A stretch of DNA of 62,955 nt, the filler included, from Syncephalis fuscata S228 (taxonomy: Eukaryota > Fungi > Zoopagomycota): assembly GCA_025786725.1 (NCBI GenBank). It is 4 parts of 4 records of this genome, joined end to end, with 100 filler letters (N's around TTAATTAATTAA, not from the genome) between each part and the next. Parts side by side here need not be neighbours in the genome. Positions count along the whole stretch, not along the records: positions 52,098 to 62,955 come from JAHLTZ010000289.1; 3 more parts are not named here. One strand, 5' to 3'. Below, one piece after another: positions 4,819-62,105 of the stretch. Position 1 is the stretch's first letter; every line of letters begins with the position of its first letter. Below the pieces are notes generated by a model. The model worked only from the letters and a program-made list of their open reading frames with translations, ran no database searches and was not told the origin of the DNA. The translations under genes were made by a program, and so were the position numbers.

Positions 4819-6326
4819 AAAAGCTAATTTACCTTGGAGTTTATCGATTTTAAACAACATAATAACAATGATCATTTTTAATGACCGTTACTAATTTTTT
4901 TAACCAATATTTATAAAAAATTAATACTGCATTATCTTTAATACACTTTAATTGTACATATTAGCAAGCACTTGCCATTATTTAACAATCATACTAGCCA
5001 ATAAACAATTTTATTTACATGTATATCATTGAAACAAGTACTCACAGATTTATTATTGCTCGTGACTGCCAATTGTTTTCTTTTGCCCAATTCTTATCGC
5101 CGTCTTTCAGTTTTACAATCCACAATATAACTTCTTGCCTATTATGTATAGCATTATACTTACTTGCGGTCAATCTTGTGCAAACTTGGTTTTTGGCCTT
5201 ATTTCACCACTACCCCTTATTCTTGTATCCCCCATCGGATTACAGCCGCCTGCAGCAACAGCCAGATCGATACTTGAGTAAGGAGACAGGTAAGATGTTA
5301 ATGCAAATGGCACTTACACTACCGCAGCAAATAGCCATAAATTATACTTTCTAAATATTTAGTACTATAATTAATACATTCAGCCATCTTTATGGTTTAA
5401 AATGCTTTTATGTAGGTACGTACATATGTGTATACATACATGATAACGTACCAATGACAAGTATTAATTTGGCAATAGGCCACTCACGTCGTGCGCCTAC
5501 TTGCATCATTACCTGCTTATTTTTCAAGTTATTAGCTTGGCAAAAAGTATTATTAATGGCGTGTTATGGCTAGCATAATGATTATAAGCCATTCAATATT
5601 TGCTATTCATAATAAACAACACTATTAACAAAGCAACAAAAGCATTTTTATTATTATTATTAGTAGTAGTATTAGTAGTAGTAGTAGTAGTAAATAAACA
5701 GTATTCAATAGGCTTTTGCAGAGGCTTTGGTCATACGACCTTTTTTATAGCCACACGCAACAAGTTTTCGATCACTGCACCTCTCAAGCGTTTTCATCCT
5801 CCGCCAACTGTCTTTTGTCGAATTCTTCTTCCGCTTTTCTTTACCGCCATCGTTGTTCGTCACCGAGTCGCTTTCCTTGAAATAGTTGGTTTACCATTCG
5901 TTTCTGGTTGGATAATTAAGCACGCAACGTGGTTTCTAGTCTTTATTAATACAGTTTATTTATTACTATTGACTCATCAGGCATTACGCCGTTATTTGGC
6001 CGTCAATACACCCACTCTTCTACTCGCTCTCTCTCTCTATTTCTCTCTCTATTTCTTCTCCTAATCTAATATTTCAAAAGCAACTGAATGTGGTACGAAT
6101 CTATCTAAACTGGTTCGATAGAAGAGGCTTATCTATTGTCTGGGCCTGCGAAGTGTCCCATTGATATCCTGTCCCTTATTAGTCATCCTGCGCAAGTCAT
6201 CTGTGTCCCAACGTATACTTTTGTAGAATCTCCTTTATATCTAATACTAAACAACTCCATAGTCTACACGTATATAGCTACTGGTAGTCTTTAATCTTTT
6301 CTTTATTCATTGACCTTGCCGTATCA

Positions 6327-10462: not shown

Positions 10463-11938
10463 CTATCTACGACGACGATCGTGATATCTATCATTATCGT
10501 CGTGTTCTCTTCGGTTTCGATGTCGATTAGACGATGGACTACGTTCACGACTATTACGACGACGAGCATGATGTTGATGATGACGCGGTTCATGTTCATA
10601 AGACCGTGGCCGTTGATAATGATGACTTGACTCCGATCGGCCAAAATGATGATGATCTCTTTTATCTTTTGACTTTTGTAGTTGATGTTGTTGATCGCGG
10701 TCATTCGACGTCACTTTATGTTCATTATCTTCTCTTGGTGTTGCCTTAACTGTTCTACCATCGGCATGCTCAAATACCATTTCGTATTGATCGGCATCTT
10801 GTCGACCTTGTCGTTTCATAGCCAATCCTTTTCCGACATCGTCACCGGCGGCTCGTGCTCGACGTGCATTGGTCCAATCGCCGTGTAGTTTACTTACAGA
10901 TTGTGAAAAGTCCACTTTAATACGTCGATCATCCACGAGTACATTATCCATTTTAAAATACGCTTCTTCAGCGTGTTCACGCTCTTCAAATTCCACAAAT
11001 GCATAGCATAGCGATTCATTAGTGCGACGGTCACGAATGACTTCACACGATGATATGGCGCCGAATCGAGAGAATATTAATTCTAAATCTTCATCTTGCG
11101 TAACTGGATTCAATTTACATATAAATAGTACGTTTTCCGGCGGCTTAATATCGGCAAATGGCAAATCACCGACCATTTCAAGGGTAAGTGCGCGGGCCTG
11201 TGCTTCACGTTGTCGTTGACGTGCTAATAACTCCTCTGGTCCCATACCTTCAGGATCATCAATCGATTCATCTTCGCCGAGTCTAACTGTAGCCAGTTGT
11301 TCGGCAGTTGGCATAGGCGATGCATCTGGTACACTAAGACCATGAGGATCGGGAAATGGATCATCCAGTATAATGGTATGTCTAATACGAATATCTCGAA
11401 ACGGCTGATGATTATCGTCGCATTGAGCGTCATTAATAAGATCGAGTACTTCAAAGCCTTCAACGATATGACCAAATACTGTGTAGCGGCCATCAAGATA
11501 GTCAAGTTCATCGCCCAGTGTAATAAAGAACTGTGAGCCACTAAGTGCTAATGAAGTGCTTGTATCGCTAGTTTTATCGGCTGTTGTTGTTGTCGTCGTA
11601 TTAGTTGAATTATGTTCAGTGGCTACAACAGCCATAGAGACAGTGCCTCGCTTTTTATGTTTAAGTTTTGGATGTATCTCGGCTGGAAAGTAGCGCTTTG
11701 CTGCTCGTTCCTCTGTTGACAGTCCTTCTAATAGACTGAATACGCTTTCACCGCCCTTGCCACTTCCTGTAGGATCGCCAGTTTGAGCGGCAAAATCCTT
11801 TTCAACGCAAAACATTGAACAAAAGTTGTAGTATTTAATCTTGCATAGTTTTAAAAAGTTAAGGCAAGTACGTGGACAACGATCTACTTCGAGATCTATA
11901 ACCAAATCGCCTAAAGATGTTTCAAGTAGAACGCTCAT
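10463..11938 (-). CDS. PPIL4: Cyclophilin-RRM protein PPIL4/Rct1
   Basis: [69 protein letters not shown]-rich tail. Confidence 0.95.
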
Positions 11939-12152: not shown

Positions 12153-13943
12153 ATGGATTACGGACGACGACAGTCATTACAGCCCATGAAGGCTTCTTAT
12201 ATATTTCCAACGTTAAAAACCCAAGAAATTCTTACATGTCTTCATGAATTGCAAATACCTTTCTCAGAAGACGACCTACAACGACCTTCACATATGCGTA
12301 TGATGTCTGTATACGAAAGTATTTGTTATGTCTTTATGGGTGTATCGCGTGAAGATATTGTGTCTATTGACAAATTTACATCGAATATGTCATATCCCGA
12401 TCTATACCAGAATGCACTTGTATCCATGTCATTTTATCGGTATTTGTAAGTTGTTACTTAATTATCGTTATATTTACTTATTAATATTTTATTTAGATCG
12501 CGGTTTATGCAAGCGATAGGTATTGATGATTTTGGCTTTAAAGATCTGGCTAAACCGGAACCAGGACGTGTTCGTCGTATTATGAGTGCTGTAATCAATT
12601 TTGCCAAGTTTCGTGAAGAAAGAATGGATGTATTAGACCAATTTACTATTAAATCAGTAAGCAACACACTATGTTATTTCTAGCACTAATATTATTGGTA
12701 GGAAGAGCTACTGGATCAACATGCATTATTGCAACAACAGAATGAGCAGCTAAAAGAACATTTAAAAAGTATAAAGTAAGAATAAGCAGGTATATAAATT
12801 TAATACAGCTTACATTAATGAATAGAATACAACAAGAACGTGAATTAGCACAAGTCCAAAAGCTGGAAGAAGAGAAATCAGGCATTCAATCTGAACTTCG
12901 TGAAATGAACAAACAACAAACACGGCTTAATGCAGAGATTGAAGAACAAAAACAAGAGAAAGGACAACTTTCTGATAAAATGGTAAATCATAAATATTTC
13001 AATTTACAACACTTATATTATTGAGTATAGACAAGTGCCCAATTTGAATTAATTGAGGTCAAACAAGAGATTGGTCGATTACAAGCCCGTATTGTTCCTA
13101 GTCCGGAGAAATTACAGGAGGTAAATGGAATAGATAGCATTGATTAAATAGAGACTAATGATCGTTTTAGTTGATTGATAAATTGAATGCAGACTTGGTT
13201 AATACGCGTCAAAAGATTAGTGTTGAGGAATTAAAAGCCCATGAGTTTCAAAGTAGAATTAGTAATATTCAATATTTAGCTCAGGTAACTATTGATATGG
13301 CCAATCATTGAATAATACAACTAAGACTGGTATAGGATGTTGAAGCGTGTAAACAATTGATGCAAGATTGTTTAGAAGAGACAGAGAATTGTCAGAATAT
13401 TACACGAGAAATTACTATTCTTTGTGAGAAAGTGGAAAAAAAAGAGCTTGAAATTCACGATTTAACCTATAAACTTGAGGTAAATAGATATATTAACAAT
13501 AAACTGTATACATATGTGTGTATTAATGTTCATTATAGTCTCAAGAACGTCAAATTACAAAGGCCAAAGATATGCTAGAGAAATTGCATGTACAGCACCA
13601 ACAACAGCAAGAGATAATTGCCCATAAAATGGATCGACTTCATGAAGATTATGGTGAATTGCAACGAGAAAGTACTGTTTATGCGCAAAAGATTATTGAA
13701 TATCAAGAATTAATAACCGAGAAAGAGGCACAAGTAAGTATTGGCCATAATTACTTTATTGTAGCAACTATGTTGATCATTTACGTATTTAAATAATCAC
13801 TATTCTAGATGGCTGAACTACATAAAGATGTCGAACAAGAGATATCAAGCATTCAAATGAGCTATATGCGACTTCGACAACAAGTAGAAGTGTATCTAGT
13901 CAAAGTACAACGTCATTTAGTAATACCAAAGGAACATGAATAA
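12153..13943 (+). CDS. NUF2: Kinetochore protein Nuf2, multi-exon
   Basis: FPTLKTQEILTCL...FSEDDLQRP and DFGFKDLAKPEPGRVRRIMSAVINFAKFREE, followed by coiled-coil exons. Confidence 0.92.
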
Positions 13944-53177: not shown

Positions 53178-54303
53178 ATGTCTGCTATCCAAGACAAGTC
53201 TACCACTGTAGTGGCCCCCGAACAGTTGCCACCATCGTCCAGCACTGGTGGTCGCAAGAAGAAGAGCAAGAGCGGTGCCGCCAAGCGCAAGAGAAAGCAG
53301 CAGCGTGCCGCTGAAGAAGCCGCTGCTGCTAAGGCCACAGCTCTTGCGGCTACCAACATGTTTGTACACGCTGCCTCTGATGCTTCAGGTAGCGAGACTG
53401 AAGGTGCATCGACGCCCAAACATGAGATTGACACTGAGAAGCGTCAGCTTGCTGAAGCATTGTTGAACGAATCAGCATCTGTTTCGTTGAGCAAGTCTGG
53501 TAGTTCCGGTGGCCAATCCACCGCATCAAACACCGATGTTGCCTCTGAGGATGACAAGGTGGTTGAGAAGGTGAAGAAGGCCGATAAGGCCGAGGAAAAG
53601 ATTGAAGAGGAAGTCAAGGAAACTGAGGCAGAGCCTGAAGTAACCAACACTGAAGGTAGTTAGCATTATTTAATAAGTAATAGCGTATTTAACTAATAAT
53701 AATACTTTTATAGAACCAGCTGCAGTGGAAACGACCGAATCAGCTGATGTTAAGCCAGCTGAAGTTACTCCATTGGAGGAAGTAGTGGCTGCTGAGCCAG
53801 TTGAAGCTGCCTCCAAATCAGTAGAGGCTGAAGCTGTTGTCGTTGCTGATGAGCCCATTACTGAAACAGCTGCTCTTGTTGAAGAAAAGGAGCCAGTCGT
53901 TGAAGCAGCAGGCAAAGATGATGACGCTGCTGTTGTTGCGGAGGAAGCTAAGCCTGTTGAACAAGAGGCTGTAGAGGAGGAGAAGAAAGTAGAGGCAGTT
54001 GTAGTTGAAGATGAAGTTAAGCCAGAAGTAACTGAGGAAGTCAAGGCGGCTGAACCAGTTAAAGAAGAAGTGGAAGAGACACGGGCTGAAGAGCCAACAC
54101 CTGGTGTATCAACACGTAGCGTTGAAAGTGGCGCAGTTCTTGTTACTAAAGTACCAGTATCCAAATCAAGTAACAAGACAGCACCATCATCCAAGACACG
54201 TTCTGTGCAGCCATCGATCGTTTCTGACACAACAGTTGATACGGCAACACCCAAGAAGAAGAAGAGCATTTGGAAGAAGATCAAAAAGATCCTTAAAAAG
54301 TAA
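53178..54303 (+). CDS. Acidic Glu/Ala/Val-rich low-complexity protein with basic termini, one intron (53656-53713)
   Basis: Two ORFs joined by a GT-AG intron; C-terminal amphipathic KKKSIWKKIKKILKK. Confidence 0.8.
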
Positions 54304-55829
54304 AGCAATTAAGGATATGACAGGCATTACAGTGTCTGTCGCCACAGCACCCTTTTGAATTGTGTGTTGACAAGTGTAACGATCATGTTATATTTACACA
54401 CACACACACACACAACGCTACGCAATCCGATCAAGTACATACTCTGATATCTTATTATAGATGACGTGTAATCACCGACAACGAATGCGTATTTGTGTAT
54501 CGCCGTTTCTGCGTGTATAATTGGTGTTGTTTTTGTTTTCTTCGTTTTTAGTGCGCTGATTTACCTTATGCTTCGTTTCGTATTATTTCATCGAGATGTG
54601 CCTCTTTCTATTTTCATTCTTCCTATGCACACCGACAACAACATGCATGCTGCACACATTATATATATATTTTATATAACCATTTATAATTTGTTGGCGC
54701 CTTTTTGTGACATTTCTGCAACTCATTTGATATTCAGCTACAATCTATCAACACGAGTTGACCATTGAACCTATTCAATTAACCAACCAACCACTATTAG
54801 TACTAACCACAGCTATATTATGATACTTGGGAATGATGCTACAATATTAATCGTTTTTATTAACTATTAGCAAACAGTTTGTTTTTTTCTGTTATTCCAC
54901 TAATATCATACAATCATAAATAAATCTATCATTGAAAAATACTAATACTAGTAATACTAGGGAGCTATTTTACTTTGAATTCCTGTCCTTCAGTTTAAGG
55001 ATAAAAATATCCATAATTTGAATAGTAAACCGTCGATCAGTTTTACTACTGAGAAGTGCTATTTGTTGAAGCAATGCCACATCAACTTTGATTGAATCAA
55101 TCAATATTCGATATTAGTGTTAATAAATATTATAGTATTTCATGTCACTTACAATAAAATATAATAGATAGATAAATGTTAATCCATGTTATTATTGCTG
55201 TAAAGTATTGAAAGCATTATAATTTAGTGATTTAATATAACTCACCACCCAGTTACATGTTTAGTAGAACAACAAATGTGTAGTTCAATCAAGTAAAGGA
55301 TGTCAGCTTTGATCTTTTGACACTAAATTACATGAGTCTACTAATAACTTAATACATGGAAGTTATTATACGTTGCCTTTTACATTTTTATTTACTCGTT
55401 TCACTCTTATTTTTCTATTGCTATCTTATTGTTCTATTTAGTGCTATATTATACAATAATACCGAATATAACAATATAAATAGCATACGTATTTGAACAT
55501 CAATAAATAACATGATTCAATCCCTAGACTTTATTTCTTTTACTTTACATCAACACCTGTTCAAGTAACCTCAGCGGCATGCCGTATCTTCTGGCTACAA
55601 CTGCCGCCACAAGATCTTCCTGATAAAGAAACTCAACCTATCATAATTGCATATGATGGAGGCCATTTGCTTCATCAATGGTTGGCAAATAAACTGCGCC
55701 TACCAAGTTGATATTAAGAATGCCTAAGAGAATGGTGAACATCAGAAATGCTAGTCGTCCTACCTTCTTGCGACCATAGACAAGTATCTTACATAGTAAA
55801 TATGCCCAAAATACAACAGTAAAAGATTA

Positions 55830-55967
55830 GAAAATAGAAGAGACCATTCAGATACAAGAACCCACACTGTATGTAGTAACAACAATAACAACTACAGAAT
55901 GACATGAAATCATAATTATATGGCTTTTATTAATACTCAATCAATCTTTCTACGCATAGCCAACAAC
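55830..55967 (+). repeat. ~135-bp direct repeat, copy 1 (copy 2 at 59922-60057)
   Basis: Shared AGATACAAGAACCCACACTGTA(T/C)GTAGTAACAACAATAACAA...ATATGGCTTTTATTAATA...ATAGCCAACAAC. Confidence 0.85.
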
Positions 55968-57703
55968 AATAATAATCAGCCTTATGAATTGCAAAGTAGT
56001 TAAATGAATATTGTAGCTATGTTTGTTGTGAATAACAGCATGACTTCAATTGAAACAAATTTTGCTTTGAAAACTCAAAATATGAGAGTCAAAGTAGAAT
56101 TGGGAAATTTTGAAAAGCTAAAAATTCTTGATAAGAAAAAAAGTTAATTACAATAAATGCAACAAATTCTATTTTAAACTTTGTTTATTTACATAATCTA
56201 ATTAATGTAGCAATATTAACGGCAATGCCAATAGTGTTTTATTTGCCAAAATACTTCCAACAACTTACTTGTGGTAAATGTGGCTAACAAATACAATACA
56301 AAAATATGCTCTGTAAGAATTAGTATTAATAGTATTGAACTGGTAGTTAATGTTAAAACAAATGTTTATATTGAATAAATACAAACTACTAATGAAACAA
56401 CTATCAAAGTAAATAAAGTGTAATGCAAACAAAATAATTTAATTAATAATTTTTTTAAAATATAAAATTGACCAACAGATAAAATTATACTTGTTTGTTT
56501 AAAGCGTTTCAGATATCAGATTTAGCAAGTAAACAATTTCGAATTACATAAAAGTATTACTGTCTTGATTAACTTGAGCTAATTAGTTGATGTATCAAGC
56601 AAAAGTGGAGATATGCAAAATAAAACTGTCAATATGGCATTTATCATTGATAAACTAAAACAATTTACTTGAACATTTATTCTTAAACGCCACAATAGTC
56701 GCTTCAATATTCTAATTTAAAAGAGTCGTGGAACATGGCAAAAGAAGCTTAAGAGGGTGTTGTGGTGGATTACTTAAATTACTTGATTTGTATTAAATCT
56801 TATGGTAATTTTATTAACTAAATAAAGATAACCTTTTTTCATAATATTAAGCACAATATTGGTTGTTTAATGTAATTTAACTGTTAAATAACTATAATAG
56901 CCTCACATTTAAACTAAATATCCGCTTTAGTGAAAATGAAACTGAGTGGTGAGTGTCATTGGTGATAAAATATTTATTTACCATTATTATTGCACTGTAG
57001 ATATCTATCCTGTATACATATACTATATATCCGCGTATATCACTAATATTGTAAATTGTAAAAGCTATATTAACAAAGGCTAAAAGTTTACTGCCAGCTG
57101 GATTCTTTAATAGATTTTGATTTATTTTGCTCATTACTTTTAGTAAATTGCATTAGTATAGTTTTGCTATTACTATTCATGTATTTGTTCTGTCTATTTA
57201 TTTTATTTTATAGTATTCTATGCTTTATTGCCATGTTTTATTAAAAAAGCTTATTTATTCTAATTTCAGCACAATGTTATGTAGCTATATGATAATAATA
57301 GCTTTGCTACTATCCATACCAATATATGTCTATAGCTTAGACAATATAATTATACACATTTTGTTAATTTAACTATTTGATTAATAGTTATTAAGCATTG
57401 AATGCAAATAGAACATGGTTATAAATATAGCAATTCGATTGTATATAGTTAAGATGAAACCATAAGTTTATTACTATAAACTTGCACAGTTGAATAGGGA
57501 CAACTAGATGCAATCTTGCTAATAAAATAATGATCTCATTGATTAAAGACTGGATAAACCGGAGCATTGGCCAAAACTTGATATATAAATAGACTGGACG
57601 GCGTAGTTGTCAAATAGTCTTGCTTTGCACCGAATATATACCTAAAGTGTATTGGAATAGTGGCTTGATTGCACTACCGATGCTGATGTCTTGAAACCAT
57701 CGA

Positions 57704-58678
57704 TTAGTCTGTATTTACAAATAAAAATATTATATGCCATATAATTAGTGTATAAGGCATCAATATTAATATTAAATAATCGGTACAATCAGTAAATGGC
57801 ATAATTAATATATGGTCAGTCGACGTATAATATAACTTACCCCCTATTAATAATAAGTTATTTATATGCATAGTACATGACATAGTTAGTACATAGTTAG
57901 TTAACATACAACACAACTTACAGTCTATTAATATTGTTATTTATACACATAATACATGGTACATAATTAGTGCATAATCAGTTGATATATAATATAACTT
58001 ACCCCCTATTAATAATAAGTTATTTATATGCATAGTACATGACATAGTTAGTACATAGTTAGTTAACATACAACACAACTTACACCCTATTAATATCAAG
58101 TTGTTTATACGCATAATACGTGGTACATAATTAGTGCATAATCAGTTGATATATAATATAACTTACAATCTATTAAGTTATTTATACGCATAATACATGG
58201 TGCATAGTCAGTGCATAATTAGTCAATATATAATACAACTTACATTCTATTAATATTAAATTATTTATACGCATAATACATGGTACATAATTAGTGTATA
58301 ATCAGTCAATATATAATATAACTTACTGCCTATTAATATTAAGTTGTTTATACGCATAATACGTGGTACATAATTAGTACATGATCAGTCAATAATAGTA
58401 TAACTTACAACCTATTAGTATTAAGTTATTTATGCGCGTAATAAACGGTACATAATTAGTGCATAGTCAGTCAATATACAATACAACTTACTCCCTATTA
58501 ATATTAAGTTAGAAATACCGTTAGTAAGCATGATAATATAATATATCTATTGTCATCGAAACATACGACGAACCAAAGTTGATTTAGCATCCACCATAGC
58601 TGGTTTAGCATCTACTATGGTTGTAGCGGCTATCAAAGCCACAAGGACGATGCAAATAACGGCAATGGAAAGCTTCAT
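57704..58678 (-). CDS. Secreted prepro-peptide gene with nine 3-nt micro-exons; predicted 47 aa MKLSIAVICIVLVALIAATTIVDAKPAMVDAKSTLVRR-SCKYWWDWD
   Basis: Exon 1 58678-58567; 3-nt exons at 58494-92, 58411-09, 58329-27, 58246-44, 58169-67, 58086-84, 58005-03, 57924-22, 57843-41; last exon from 57708. Donors GTATGT/GTAAGT, acceptors TAATAG/CAG, CTAA(T/C) branch-like motifs. Confidence 0.8.
57790..58510. repeat. ~81-bp tandem repeat, 9 units, each one intron plus one 3-nt exon
   Basis: Recurring AACTTAC-NNN-CTATTA every 77-83 bp; the 3 nt are the most variable part of the unit. Confidence 0.92.
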
Positions 58679-59921
58679 GGTGATATTGATTTGTTAAGAC
58701 AAACAAATAAAAGAGATAGTAGAGTGTGGTTGGTATAGAGTGGAGAGTAGAGTGTGTATAGCAAGAAGTAGAGTGTAATGATGATATCGCAGTTGGTTGT
58801 GTATATTTTGTGGGCTATTTAAACTTATGGCTATGTAGAGATACTAGTATACTGTAATATATGAGGTATATTTTTGGTGTATAATATGAACCAATAAAGC
58901 AATCCAGGTGATGGTCTGAAATGCGCATGCACCAATAGATTCATGGCGTGACAGCATGCTTTCCAGCTTTGATTTTGACCTGCTCGGCATTTACACAAAT
59001 GACGTAACAATGTTTATAATCCAGTACATATGCGATAGAGATAGATATACTAGCCTGTATTTTTGTCGCATGGTTTAACTATTTGCTAAAAACAAGTACA
59101 TTATTTGGTTTTGTAAAAATTATAATGATGTCTTTGCTGCTGCTTCCACTGAATGACTCGACCCCAATGTCTACATGCATACAAAATAGCACACAACACT
59201 GATGCAAAAACAAGTTTAATATATGAAACTAGTATTTTTTTATATAGCTCTTTACTTCTATACATAAGCTAATTATAATTTTTAAATTATAAAGCGTGTT
59301 GATTGGTACATGTGTGCATTTCATTCGACACTATGCTCATTGTTATGGAATAGCAATTGTTTTGAATTTACAAATGCATCATGCCACCTAGACATATTGT
59401 GCTACATGTCGTGCAACTACTATCATCCAAATGGCGGTTAATTCAAATTATCTGAAATTGACTATACAATAAGTACTATTTGTAGGGTGATGCATCACAG
59501 CATTTTGAGCAATGGAACATTCCAACATGTCATTTTCGTCGTCAGTTTTCAGTTGTAAACTAGATTGCATCGGATAAATTACACGCAATGCAATATGCAG
59601 ACACTAGATTAGACACAGTAAAAAGCTCTAACCAATTACCAACAAGCTTGAGTGCATAATGTTAATGGATTGCATATAAACCGGTAATCATCCAAGGCCT
59701 AACTGCTGCTTATATTTCTGAAACTTAATTCTGGCAAGTCAAGCAAGATGGAATATAGAAGAACAAGCCAAAGCAGAAACCAATGAAAAAAACAATCAGC
59801 AGCTCAAAGGCTTACTGGTTTAACCTATAGCAAATCATTACAGTTATGCTATGCTGAACTGCGTTTATCAAAAGTCGACTGTTGCTGATGCGACCAGAAC
59901 GGTAGCAATGATGGAATATTG

Positions 59922-60386: not shown

Positions 60387-62105
60387 ATGGAGGAAGGCGA
60401 ACTAGACTTAGACGCTAAACTTGCCGCTTCTAAAAACAACGGGCAGCCTAGTCATCGCGAAAATCTTGTACATTCTAGTACAAGCGAGTCAATCGCGTCA
60501 GGAGAACAGCAAACAGCACTAGGCCGGTCTAAATGGGAGTCTGATCACGAGTATAGCGATGACAATGAGAATAATACAACACTTAGAAAGCGAAAGCCGG
60601 CAAAAACCGAACGTAAACGATTAAAACGACGAAAAGAAACTGTAACAATGGCAGAAGAAGAAAAGACGATTGATACAATGGAAGTAACATCTAAAGCACA
60701 CCAAGGACCGCTCAATCAATCATCTGATATGGCGACAGCAGCAATGCATCAGCTATCGGTAAAAGAAGTATGGAAGCCACGACCACAGCCACAGCCACCG
60801 ACCATTCGACGATGTGGATCGGTCGATCGATATGAACGACTGAATCGTATTGATGAAGGCTCTTATGGCGTTGTTTATCGGGCACGTGATCGTGAAACCG
60901 GCGAAATAGTTGCGCTAAAACGACTCAAATGCGAGCATCAAGATCGAGTAGGCTTTCCAGTTACTGATCTACGTGAAATTCATACACTTTTATGGGTCAA
61001 ACATGAGAATATTGTCAATGTACGGGAGATTGTTGTAGGGAGTGGTACACCACCAAAGTAAGTGTAAACAATAACTATAGTAATAATAATAATAATAATA
61101 GCTGGATCATTAATACACTAATGATTAGAGTATTTATTGTGATGGATTTCCTTGAACATGACCTAAAGACGTTAATGACGGGTATGCGCTCGCCATTCAT
61201 GCAGTCGGAGGTAAAAACTCTTATGTTACAGCTATTGTCGGCTGTGAGTACACTGCATCGTAATTGGATTATTCATCGTGATTTAAAAACAAGTAATTTG
61301 TTGATGAATAATCGCGGTCGTGTTAAAGTAGCCGATTTTGGTTTGGCGCGTAAATTTGGTAGTCCACTTAATGCAATGACCATCCCTGTTGTGACACTAT
61401 GGTATCGGTAAGCCGTATGCATAACAGGTGCCTTAATAGCAACGCTAACGTAGTGACGATAAATGACCAATATTAGTGCGCCAGAACTGCTCTTAGGCGC
61501 TAAGGAGTATACGACGGCGGTTGATATGTGGTCAATTGGTTGTATATTCGGAGAAATGCTACTTAATGAACCGATGATACCAGGTCGTGGTGAGATAGAT
61601 CAGTTGAATAAGGTAAAAAAATAGGAATTAAATACATAATGGATATTAATAGATCTACAGATATTTCAATTACTTGGGACACCCAATGAAGAGATTTGGC
61701 CCGGATTAAATCAATTACCAAGTGCCAAAAGTATTAATTTTGTAGAGCAGCCGTAAGTAGTATTGATAACAAAATAAATGGATTAATTAATCGGTATGGA
61801 TAGATATAATATGCTTCGATCCAAATTTAAATACGTTACAGCAAACGGAATAGATTTGCTGGGACAGTTTCTTACTTATGATCCGGAGAAGCGGATTACG
61901 GCAGAGAAAGCATTACAGCATCCGTATTTTAGGTAAGTGTTGGGCTATGATGAATCTTAGATGATTAATGAATACAATGAACAGCGAGAATCCACCGCCA
62001 CAGCACCCGGATCTCTTTCCTAGCTGGCCATCAAAAGCGTCTAAAGAACGAGCCGGTGCTATGGTATCACCTGTACTTATTGTTCCCGAAGCAAATATGG
62101 AATAA
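60387..62105 (+). CDS. CDK11: CDK11/PITSLRE-type cyclin-dependent kinase, multi-exon
   Basis: [84 protein letters not shown]. Confidence 0.9.

Follow-up and report, generated by a model that had tools for sequence, protein, structure and literature searches.

Tens of 3-bp exons, alternatively spliced, have been described in the nank genes of Tuber melanosporum, which encode NACHT-ankyrin proteins (Iotti et al. 2012, PMID 22289772, as presented in PMC4986451, PMC10197012, PMC9815663, and PMC13449251). A 2026 paper still terms this case lineage-specific. The micro-exon genes (MEGs) of Schistosoma have exons mostly of 15 bp (6-81) and introns of 0.1-5 kb, which are not described as repeat units (PMC4350168, PMC10526429). 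Long reads from Coprinopsis cinerea show the inclusion of 3-nt internal exons, 27 exons in 26 genes (PMC12230235). Here we consider a gene family of Syncephalis fuscata (Zoopagales) whose members carry runs of successive 3-nt internal exons bounded by canonical splice sites, nine in the gene analyzed in most detail and 17-40 in its relatives. A first-pass annotation of that gene knew of no description of such an arrangement; this point is not supported, as the Tuber genes already contain tens of 3-bp micro-exons. The proposal as a whole, namely that this is a family of secreted prepropeptide genes whose mature part is encoded as an array of 3-nt exons, is in our judgment likely to be correct.

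The gene lies on the minus strand of the window, by which we mean the whole 62,955-nt stretch of DNA analyzed. A TATA-like box (58816-58823), conserved among family members that keep a native promoter, precedes a 5' UTR (58679-58787), the start of which is placed where the alignment of the retrocopy L007:5001 begins. Coding exon 1 (58678-58567, 112 nt) would encode a signal peptide and pro-region, read from the sequence as a hydrophobic N-terminus ending in VDA followed by a conserved RR, and it ends in phase 1 at a GTATGT donor directly before the array, as first reported. It contains a short internal duplication and has 3 nt fewer before the donor than its paralogues. Intron 1 (58495-58566, 72 nt, GTATGT..TAG) is homologous to intron 1 of the paralogues. 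Nine micro-exons follow, namely GGA (58492-58494), which completes the second Arg of the family-conserved RR site, GTT (58409-58411), GCA (58327-58329), AAT (58244-58246), ATT (58167-58169), GGT (58084-58086), GGG (58003-58005), ACT (57922-57924), and GGG (57841-57843). The triplets are exactly those listed in the first-pass annotation, eight of the nine being distinct, and its unit pattern TAATAG-NNN-GTAAGT has nine exact minus-strand matches between 58500 and 57835 and none in 100 dinucleotide shuffles. TRF reports the same intron-plus-triplet units (repeat interval about 81-83 nt) as a tandem array at 57826-58511, assigned to neither strand, with period 83/160.

Introns 1-9 measure 72-80 nt. 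The last intron (57709-57840, 132 nt) is an ordinary unit fused to the terminal intron of the family, a deletion of 19-21 nt having removed an acceptor, a triplet and a donor and so joined two introns. It is terminated by CAG at 57711-57709, the first AG after the last donor, and the paralogues support both this acceptor and the stop that follows it. Two terminal coding nucleotides and the TAA stop (57704-57708) occupy the site of the stop in all paralogues, intronless ones included. The 3' UTR (57451-57703), found family-wide, contains AATAAA at 57472-57467, and its end is set by the A-run of the retrocopies. The GT..AG ends are intact in each of the ten introns, and the nine array donors are perfect throughout. 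The introns checked in the first-pass annotation had been said to lack an internal AG, and this is true of introns 2-10, beyond the AG of the donor itself; intron 1 has one, 20 nt from the donor and too close to it for use. Branch-like motifs of CTAA type are indeed present in introns 2-9, with the small correction that 44-61 nt separate them from the downstream acceptor.

Joining the triplets in phase 1 reproduces the predicted ..VRR, SCKYWWDWD and stop, and the paralogues back both the phase and the RR processing site completed by splicing. The window reading frame is fixed by these paralogues rather than by the window itself, because all three registers of its array are stop-free and shuffles of triplet order leave phase 1 stop-free with P=0.55. 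A phase-0 reading of the triplets was rejected, as it has no good donor and no family match.

Gene finders miss the gene, and no public model is called over the array locus. At a distance of 1.7 kb lies a CDK11-like kinase gene with 100% identity to an S. fuscata protein; it occupies 60387-62044 (plus strand), and its public model of 377 aa seems by eye shorter than the exons, which would give about 450 aa. Synteny could not be followed in relatives, as a kinase-bearing Thamnocephalis contig and a metagenome contig both break off within 1 kb on the upstream side of this gene. A two-exon gene for an acidic, low-complexity protein of about 355 codons lies at 53178-54306 (plus strand), where the public annotation has the first exon only, plus an antisense frame. 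By eye, positions 55300-57450 resemble L008:13250-15400, a downstream flank of about 2 kb, and this likeness suggests that array genes spread by segmental duplication.

A search with exon 1 returned four small proteins and a profile search eleven, all of them hypothetical proteins of S. fuscata; P0129, P0132, and P0133 are also observed to be family members. All family data derive from a single assembly (GCA_025786725.1) of a single strain. Six further array genes with 17 to 40 micro-exons occur in this genome, one of them partly covered. L004, L005, L008, L009, and L010 share the layout of the window gene: a common 5' region, RR codons followed by a phase-1 donor, then an array and the common last exon. 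L011 contains part of a seventh array gene, on its minus strand. In all of the loci compared, array-bearing or not, the stop codon falls at one column, two bases past the last acceptor point of the array genes. The six complete genes were parsed by a single rule, with exons of 1-9 nt allowed and a minimum intron of 55 nt; the minimum had been raised from 30 nt, and the donor list widened, after the sequences had been seen, and three exons within over-long introns were added by rule. An 8-nt exon in L004 proved false, a product of the 30-nt minimum. Under the final rule there are 159 internal exons, all following a phase-1 donor, and 158 of them are multiples of three: 152 of 3 nt, four of 6 nt, one of 15 nt, and one of 21 nt, with a single exon of 2 nt.

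The micro-exon introns of the family are repeated and 70-86 nt long, and some relatives have weak donors. In five genes phase 1 stays open as far as the family stop (the shuffle probabilities multiply to about 4e-4), and in the paralogues stops occur in the other registers. L009 contains the 2-nt unit, at L009:13806, which was read through as X, and its stop comes one codon early. This only non-triplet unit is seen to lie within a G run and would represent either a genuine frameshift or a fault in the assembly. In L004 and L010, the exons of 15 and 21 nt give rise to a second dibasic site, like that of the intronless P0131. Only one canonical parse fits the public model KAI9591764.1, with exons of 94, 3, 3, and 83 nt, although its two 3-nt exons could be an ab initio prediction.

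Four paralogues are intronless, namely L006, L011:10001, and two genes in L007, and they have UTRs and stop position in common with the array genes. These twins provide a natural check of a kind that usually falls to RNA data. To illustrate, the 35 micro-exons of L008, joined in phase 1, align to intronless P0126 with a score of 109, where 2000 shuffles of exon order average 20.8 +/- 4.9 with a best of 45, and the other two registers score 11 and 13. The resulting six-cysteine peptide and P0126 share a KDPAK start, the Cys spacing and an NYPYPS loop. Likewise, the joined triplets of L005 score 67 against intronless P0124 (best shuffle 45), and at the DNA level 74 of 108 bases are identical between the L008 micro-exons and L007:3752. 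The triplets of L005 and L008 are therefore coding, as one register is open and homologous to a real coding sequence. For the window, a coding role of the triplets is inferred from the shared flanks; SCKYWWDWD scores at the shuffle mean against the intronless paralogues, among which no relative was matched.

That the family is spliced codon by codon is strongly supported by the intronless matches, by the retrocopy hallmarks described below and by the public model with two 3-nt exons, and we hold it to be very probable. In particular, the micro-exon splicing proposed in the first-pass annotation gains support from the paralogues. It is also probable, with somewhat less assurance, that the window gene itself is fully joined and expressed; its own function is less certain because it is a short, remodelled member with a nine-residue product that has no homologue. 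Under the proposed mechanism, the mature part would be encoded by exons of 3 nt (rarely 6, 15, or 21 nt) set in tandem introns of about 78 nt. The spliceosome would remove each short intron singly, by intron definition, and the triplets would be joined in phase 1 so that codons are split 1+2. The signal peptide would then be removed and a Kex2-type protease is predicted to cut after RR, leaving a short peptide. Processing at KR or RR by such proteases is established in fungi. In the case of the window gene, a short and recently remodelled member, the predicted release is SCKYWWDWD.

Variation among these genes appears to be mainly genomic. In a comparison of 135 units, conservation of the splice columns is 93-100%, whereas at the three exon positions the commonest base never rises above 42%. 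Unit pairs whose introns differ by about 5% already show differences at roughly half of the exon positions, and once intron difference reaches 8-13% the exons are near saturation; overall, triplets differ at 46-79% of positions where introns differ at 5-13%. The introns would therefore be homogenized or freshly copied, and the triplets would change independently of them. Introns 7 and 9 of the window gene are identical and precede the same triplet, GGG, the mark of a recent duplication, and this duplication and the last-intron deletion each alter the peptide by whole codons. Such a pattern would be expected if each duplication or deletion of a unit gained or lost one codon in frame, which is the mechanism that we propose.

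A different source of variation would be the skipping of triplets, so that the arrays would serve mainly for alternative splicing and each gene would give a cloud of peptides, as reported for Tuber nank and the Schistosoma MEGs. This is possible, if on balance doubtful as the main role, and it can coexist with codon-by-codon splicing. Symmetric exons preserve the frame whichever are skipped, 448 of the 512 exon subsets of the window are stop-free and specify 305 different peptides, some relatives have the weak donors noted above, and precedents exist. However, this tolerance shows no sign of selection, as single skips create 9 stops against 9.2 expected, so that selection for exon skipping has left no trace in the sequence. 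A phase-1 skip also alters the neighbouring residue, and the Cys spacing kept between array and intronless genes points to full inclusion as the selected product. The MEG likeness drawn in the first-pass annotation holds for the small symmetric exons, but variation of the MEG type by exon skipping so far finds no support.

The family could be spliced as described and the window copy nonetheless be a decaying pseudogene, its residues functionless leftovers of deletions and re-expansion. We consider this unlikely, although several features would fit it: the array has 9 units against 17-40 in relatives, a unit has been lost in the last intron, exon 1 is altered, and the peptide has one Cys and no homologue. 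Against decay, the gene retains ten introns with intact ends and nine perfect array donors, its promoter box, UTRs and AATAAA are in place, and its frame reaches the family stop. Moreover, the first triplet restores RR after the loss of 3 nt from exon 1.

The predicted product of the window gene is the shortest of the family, nine residues, rich in tryptophan and with a single Cys. No Pfam match was obtained for exon 1 or the paralogues. The mature part of P0126 is predicted to form a helical hairpin (helix-loop-helix) with paired Cys motifs at pLDDT 88, and a fold search with it gave no significant match (best E 4.3). Alpha-hairpinin-like peptides, including the vicilin leader repeat peptides, also combine such a hairpin with paired Cys and are among the weak fold matches (E >4), a fold that the window peptide, with one Cys, cannot form. 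S. fuscata is a haustorial parasite of Mucorales. From secretion, dibasic processing, the Cys pattern, the expansion of the family and this parasitic lifestyle, we infer that the relatives, mostly six-Cys helix-loop-helix peptides, may well be host-directed or antimicrobial factors, a role that we favour slightly. The peptides are candidates for naturally occurring antifungal or host-modulating agents in such a parasite.

Turning to the intronless genes, both L007 genes lack a promoter box, and their alignment to the family begins at or inside the 5' UTR and ends at an A6 run about 20 nt past AATAAA. One of the two lies between copies of a 14-bp repeat that agree at 12 of 14 positions, so that a target duplication is clear for one copy. 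These hallmarks, with an A-run of only 6 nt, indicate that the two L007 genes are copies of reverse-transcribed mRNA, and reverse transcription of spliced mRNA would be the general route to intronless copies. More diverged intronless, family-like frames are seen beside the retrocopies at L007:4500-4900 and 5750-6180, inside a tandem duplication. L006 and L011:10001 are intronless but retain the promoter, as expected from cDNA-mediated intron loss or from an older intronless state. A single clade of intronless genes is rejected (AU p 2e-10, for ten genes compared over flanks only, with weak support inside the main group), and the whole array must have been lost, or gained, on more than one occasion. 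Loss by way of cDNA would be the simpler account of the direction of change.

The interspersion of intronless and array genes in the tree, and the intact frames of all four intronless genes, might also be accommodated if only intronless genes were expressed and the arrays were silent stores or relics that reach them through DNA recombination. This is very unlikely, as exact removal of dozens of introns requires an RNA step and the array genes retain promoter, UTRs and near-perfect splice sites.

A short retroelement family is also observed in array introns, antisense, 5-20 nt after the donor, with A-rich tails and, where found, target duplications of 11-16 bp. The inserts lie at L004:6250-6570; L005:5750-6250; L009:10190-11010, 11510-11870, and 13100-13500; and L010:10740-11150. 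Motifs resembling A and B boxes begin two full copies by eye, suggesting a tRNA-derived SINE, and searches of the copies with Rfam and ARAGORN gave no match; an Rfam search returned a sub-threshold chance match alone. The machinery that moves this SINE-like element may also have made the retrocopies, and its presence in the introns of four array genes may reflect relaxed selection.

That the array is an ordinary minisatellite of an intron or 3' region with chance splice-like words, exon 1 being read through or joined to the last exon, is the least credible reading of all and is contradicted at the family level. In its favour, unspliced exon 1 is open for 41 codons, the form with all triplets skipped is also stop-terminated, and repeats such as cyanobacterial arrays can match the pattern by chance. 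Against it, these chance-matching bacterial arrays have invariant triplets, and the joined triplets of two paralogues match intronless coding sequences far above shuffles in one register only. A search with the unspliced exon-1 frame gave no homologue in a set of 5.8 billion, and no contig records that product. In a bacterial and archaeal control, 73 of 74 arrays, mostly CRISPR-like repeats of cyanobacteria, have fewer than four distinct triplets. L136-L249, L020, L039, L040, L079, and L109, cyanobacterial repeats with unique spacers and an invariant triplet, were set aside as CRISPR-like false positives. The exception in the control, L186:480-1700, has a triplet array whose introns measure only about 37 nt; its 2.2-kb contig is assigned to a Mycoplasma MAG but is probably a eukaryotic contaminant of another lineage. 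Viral contigs contained no arrays of six or more units.

A scan of metagenomes for three such units in a row found at least 120 loci, and at least 31 have arrays of 10 or more units with six or more different triplets. Among the matches listed, 630 units contain one stop in register 0 versus 41 and 78 in the others. Flanking exons encode PNP_UDP-NACHT-ankyrin (L100), NACHT (L050), GTPase (L067), and protein kinase (L041) domains, and intron style and protein type suggest that the contigs are fungal. At L100:5340-7818, a PNP_UDP-NACHT-ankyrin gene has arrays of 21 and 9 triplets between ankyrin-repeat exons, as in Tuber nank. A very AT-rich group (L041:90-1631, L017, L073, L085, L096, L112, and L130) has repeated introns of 85-97 nt and variable triplets open in phase 1; several of its arrays lie directly upstream of kinase exons, and the last exon of L041 begins in phase 1. 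These kinase exons are of a type that we take to be associated with arbuscular mycorrhizal fungi. In GTPase-domain genes (L067:2784-5645, L133, L024, and L117), the domain is followed by 14-37 triplet units whose phase-0 reading is open. Long variable arrays of 23-48 units occur at L059:14-5709, L082:761-3074 (after a transmembrane-like exon), L021:648-2826, L099, L063, L113, and L134. In L052, L068, L093, and L132, the triplets are nearly all Ala in phase 0 and the introns moderately diverged, possibly representing alanine runs encoded by micro-exons.

These loci invite a broader reading that we offer tentatively, its parts taken jointly: codon-per-exon arrays would be a general, repeatedly evolved generator of diversity in fungi and perhaps other microbial eukaryotes. 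The near-identical introns would act as recombination spacers, across which single codons are duplicated, deleted and exchanged much faster than the flanking DNA changes, and reverse transcription would export finished variants as intronless genes. In Syncephalis the outcome would be a hidden library of secreted anti-host peptides, and elsewhere variation of NLRs, GTPases and kinases. If this is true, a large class of fungal coding sequence is now filed as minisatellite. The annotation blind spot is already evident, as none of the five public array-gene models examined spans its array, the window gene has no model and the metagenomes hold at least 31 more variable arrays. Testable questions include the way in which a spliceosome deals with 9 to 40 neighbouring 3-nt exons, the number of introns that come or go in a single event, and whether codon-level variation arises from DNA turnover or from exon skipping.

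Among known systems, the 1-3 nt micro-exons of Coprinopsis cinerea occur at about one per gene and do not form arrays, unlike those of S. fuscata. The Schistosoma MEGs share with this family small symmetric exons for most of the coding sequence, a parasitic owner and nearby retroelement insertions, and their signal peptide and secreted variable products would have counterparts in the products predicted here. However, their exons are larger and their introns long, whereas here 3-nt exons sit in repeated introns of about 78 nt, and alternative splicing, a possibility here, has been demonstrated for MEGs. No homology to MEG proteins was found, all homologues recovered being proteins of S. fuscata. 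The closer precedent is Tuber nank, which, as far as the citing papers describe it, is likewise a fungal multigene family with consecutive 3-bp exons and a proposed role in protein diversification at an interface between organisms. In those descriptions the arrays vary the sensor part of a large intracellular receptor of an ascomycete and alternative splicing is the reported mechanism, whereas in S. fuscata, a member of Zoopagomycota, it is the entire mature portion of small secreted peptides that is written this way. Codons split in phase 1 and intronless twins further set this family apart from nank as the citing papers present it. Exon 1 and the paralogues have no Pfam match to NACHT or ankyrin domains, and the array gene is therefore not a nank gene. 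A literature search conducted mostly outside subscription journals returned no description of such arrays for secreted peptides, Zoopagomycota or intronless twins. The architecture thus has a precedent; what is new is its use for secreted peptides, the encoding of a whole mature peptide in this way, the split codons, the intronless twins and, in metagenomes, similar arrays beside kinase, GTPase and NLR exons. What had been an oddity of one truffle receptor family extends to a different phylum and a different class of protein, and reaches here a limit case in which an intron splits every codon of the mature peptide.
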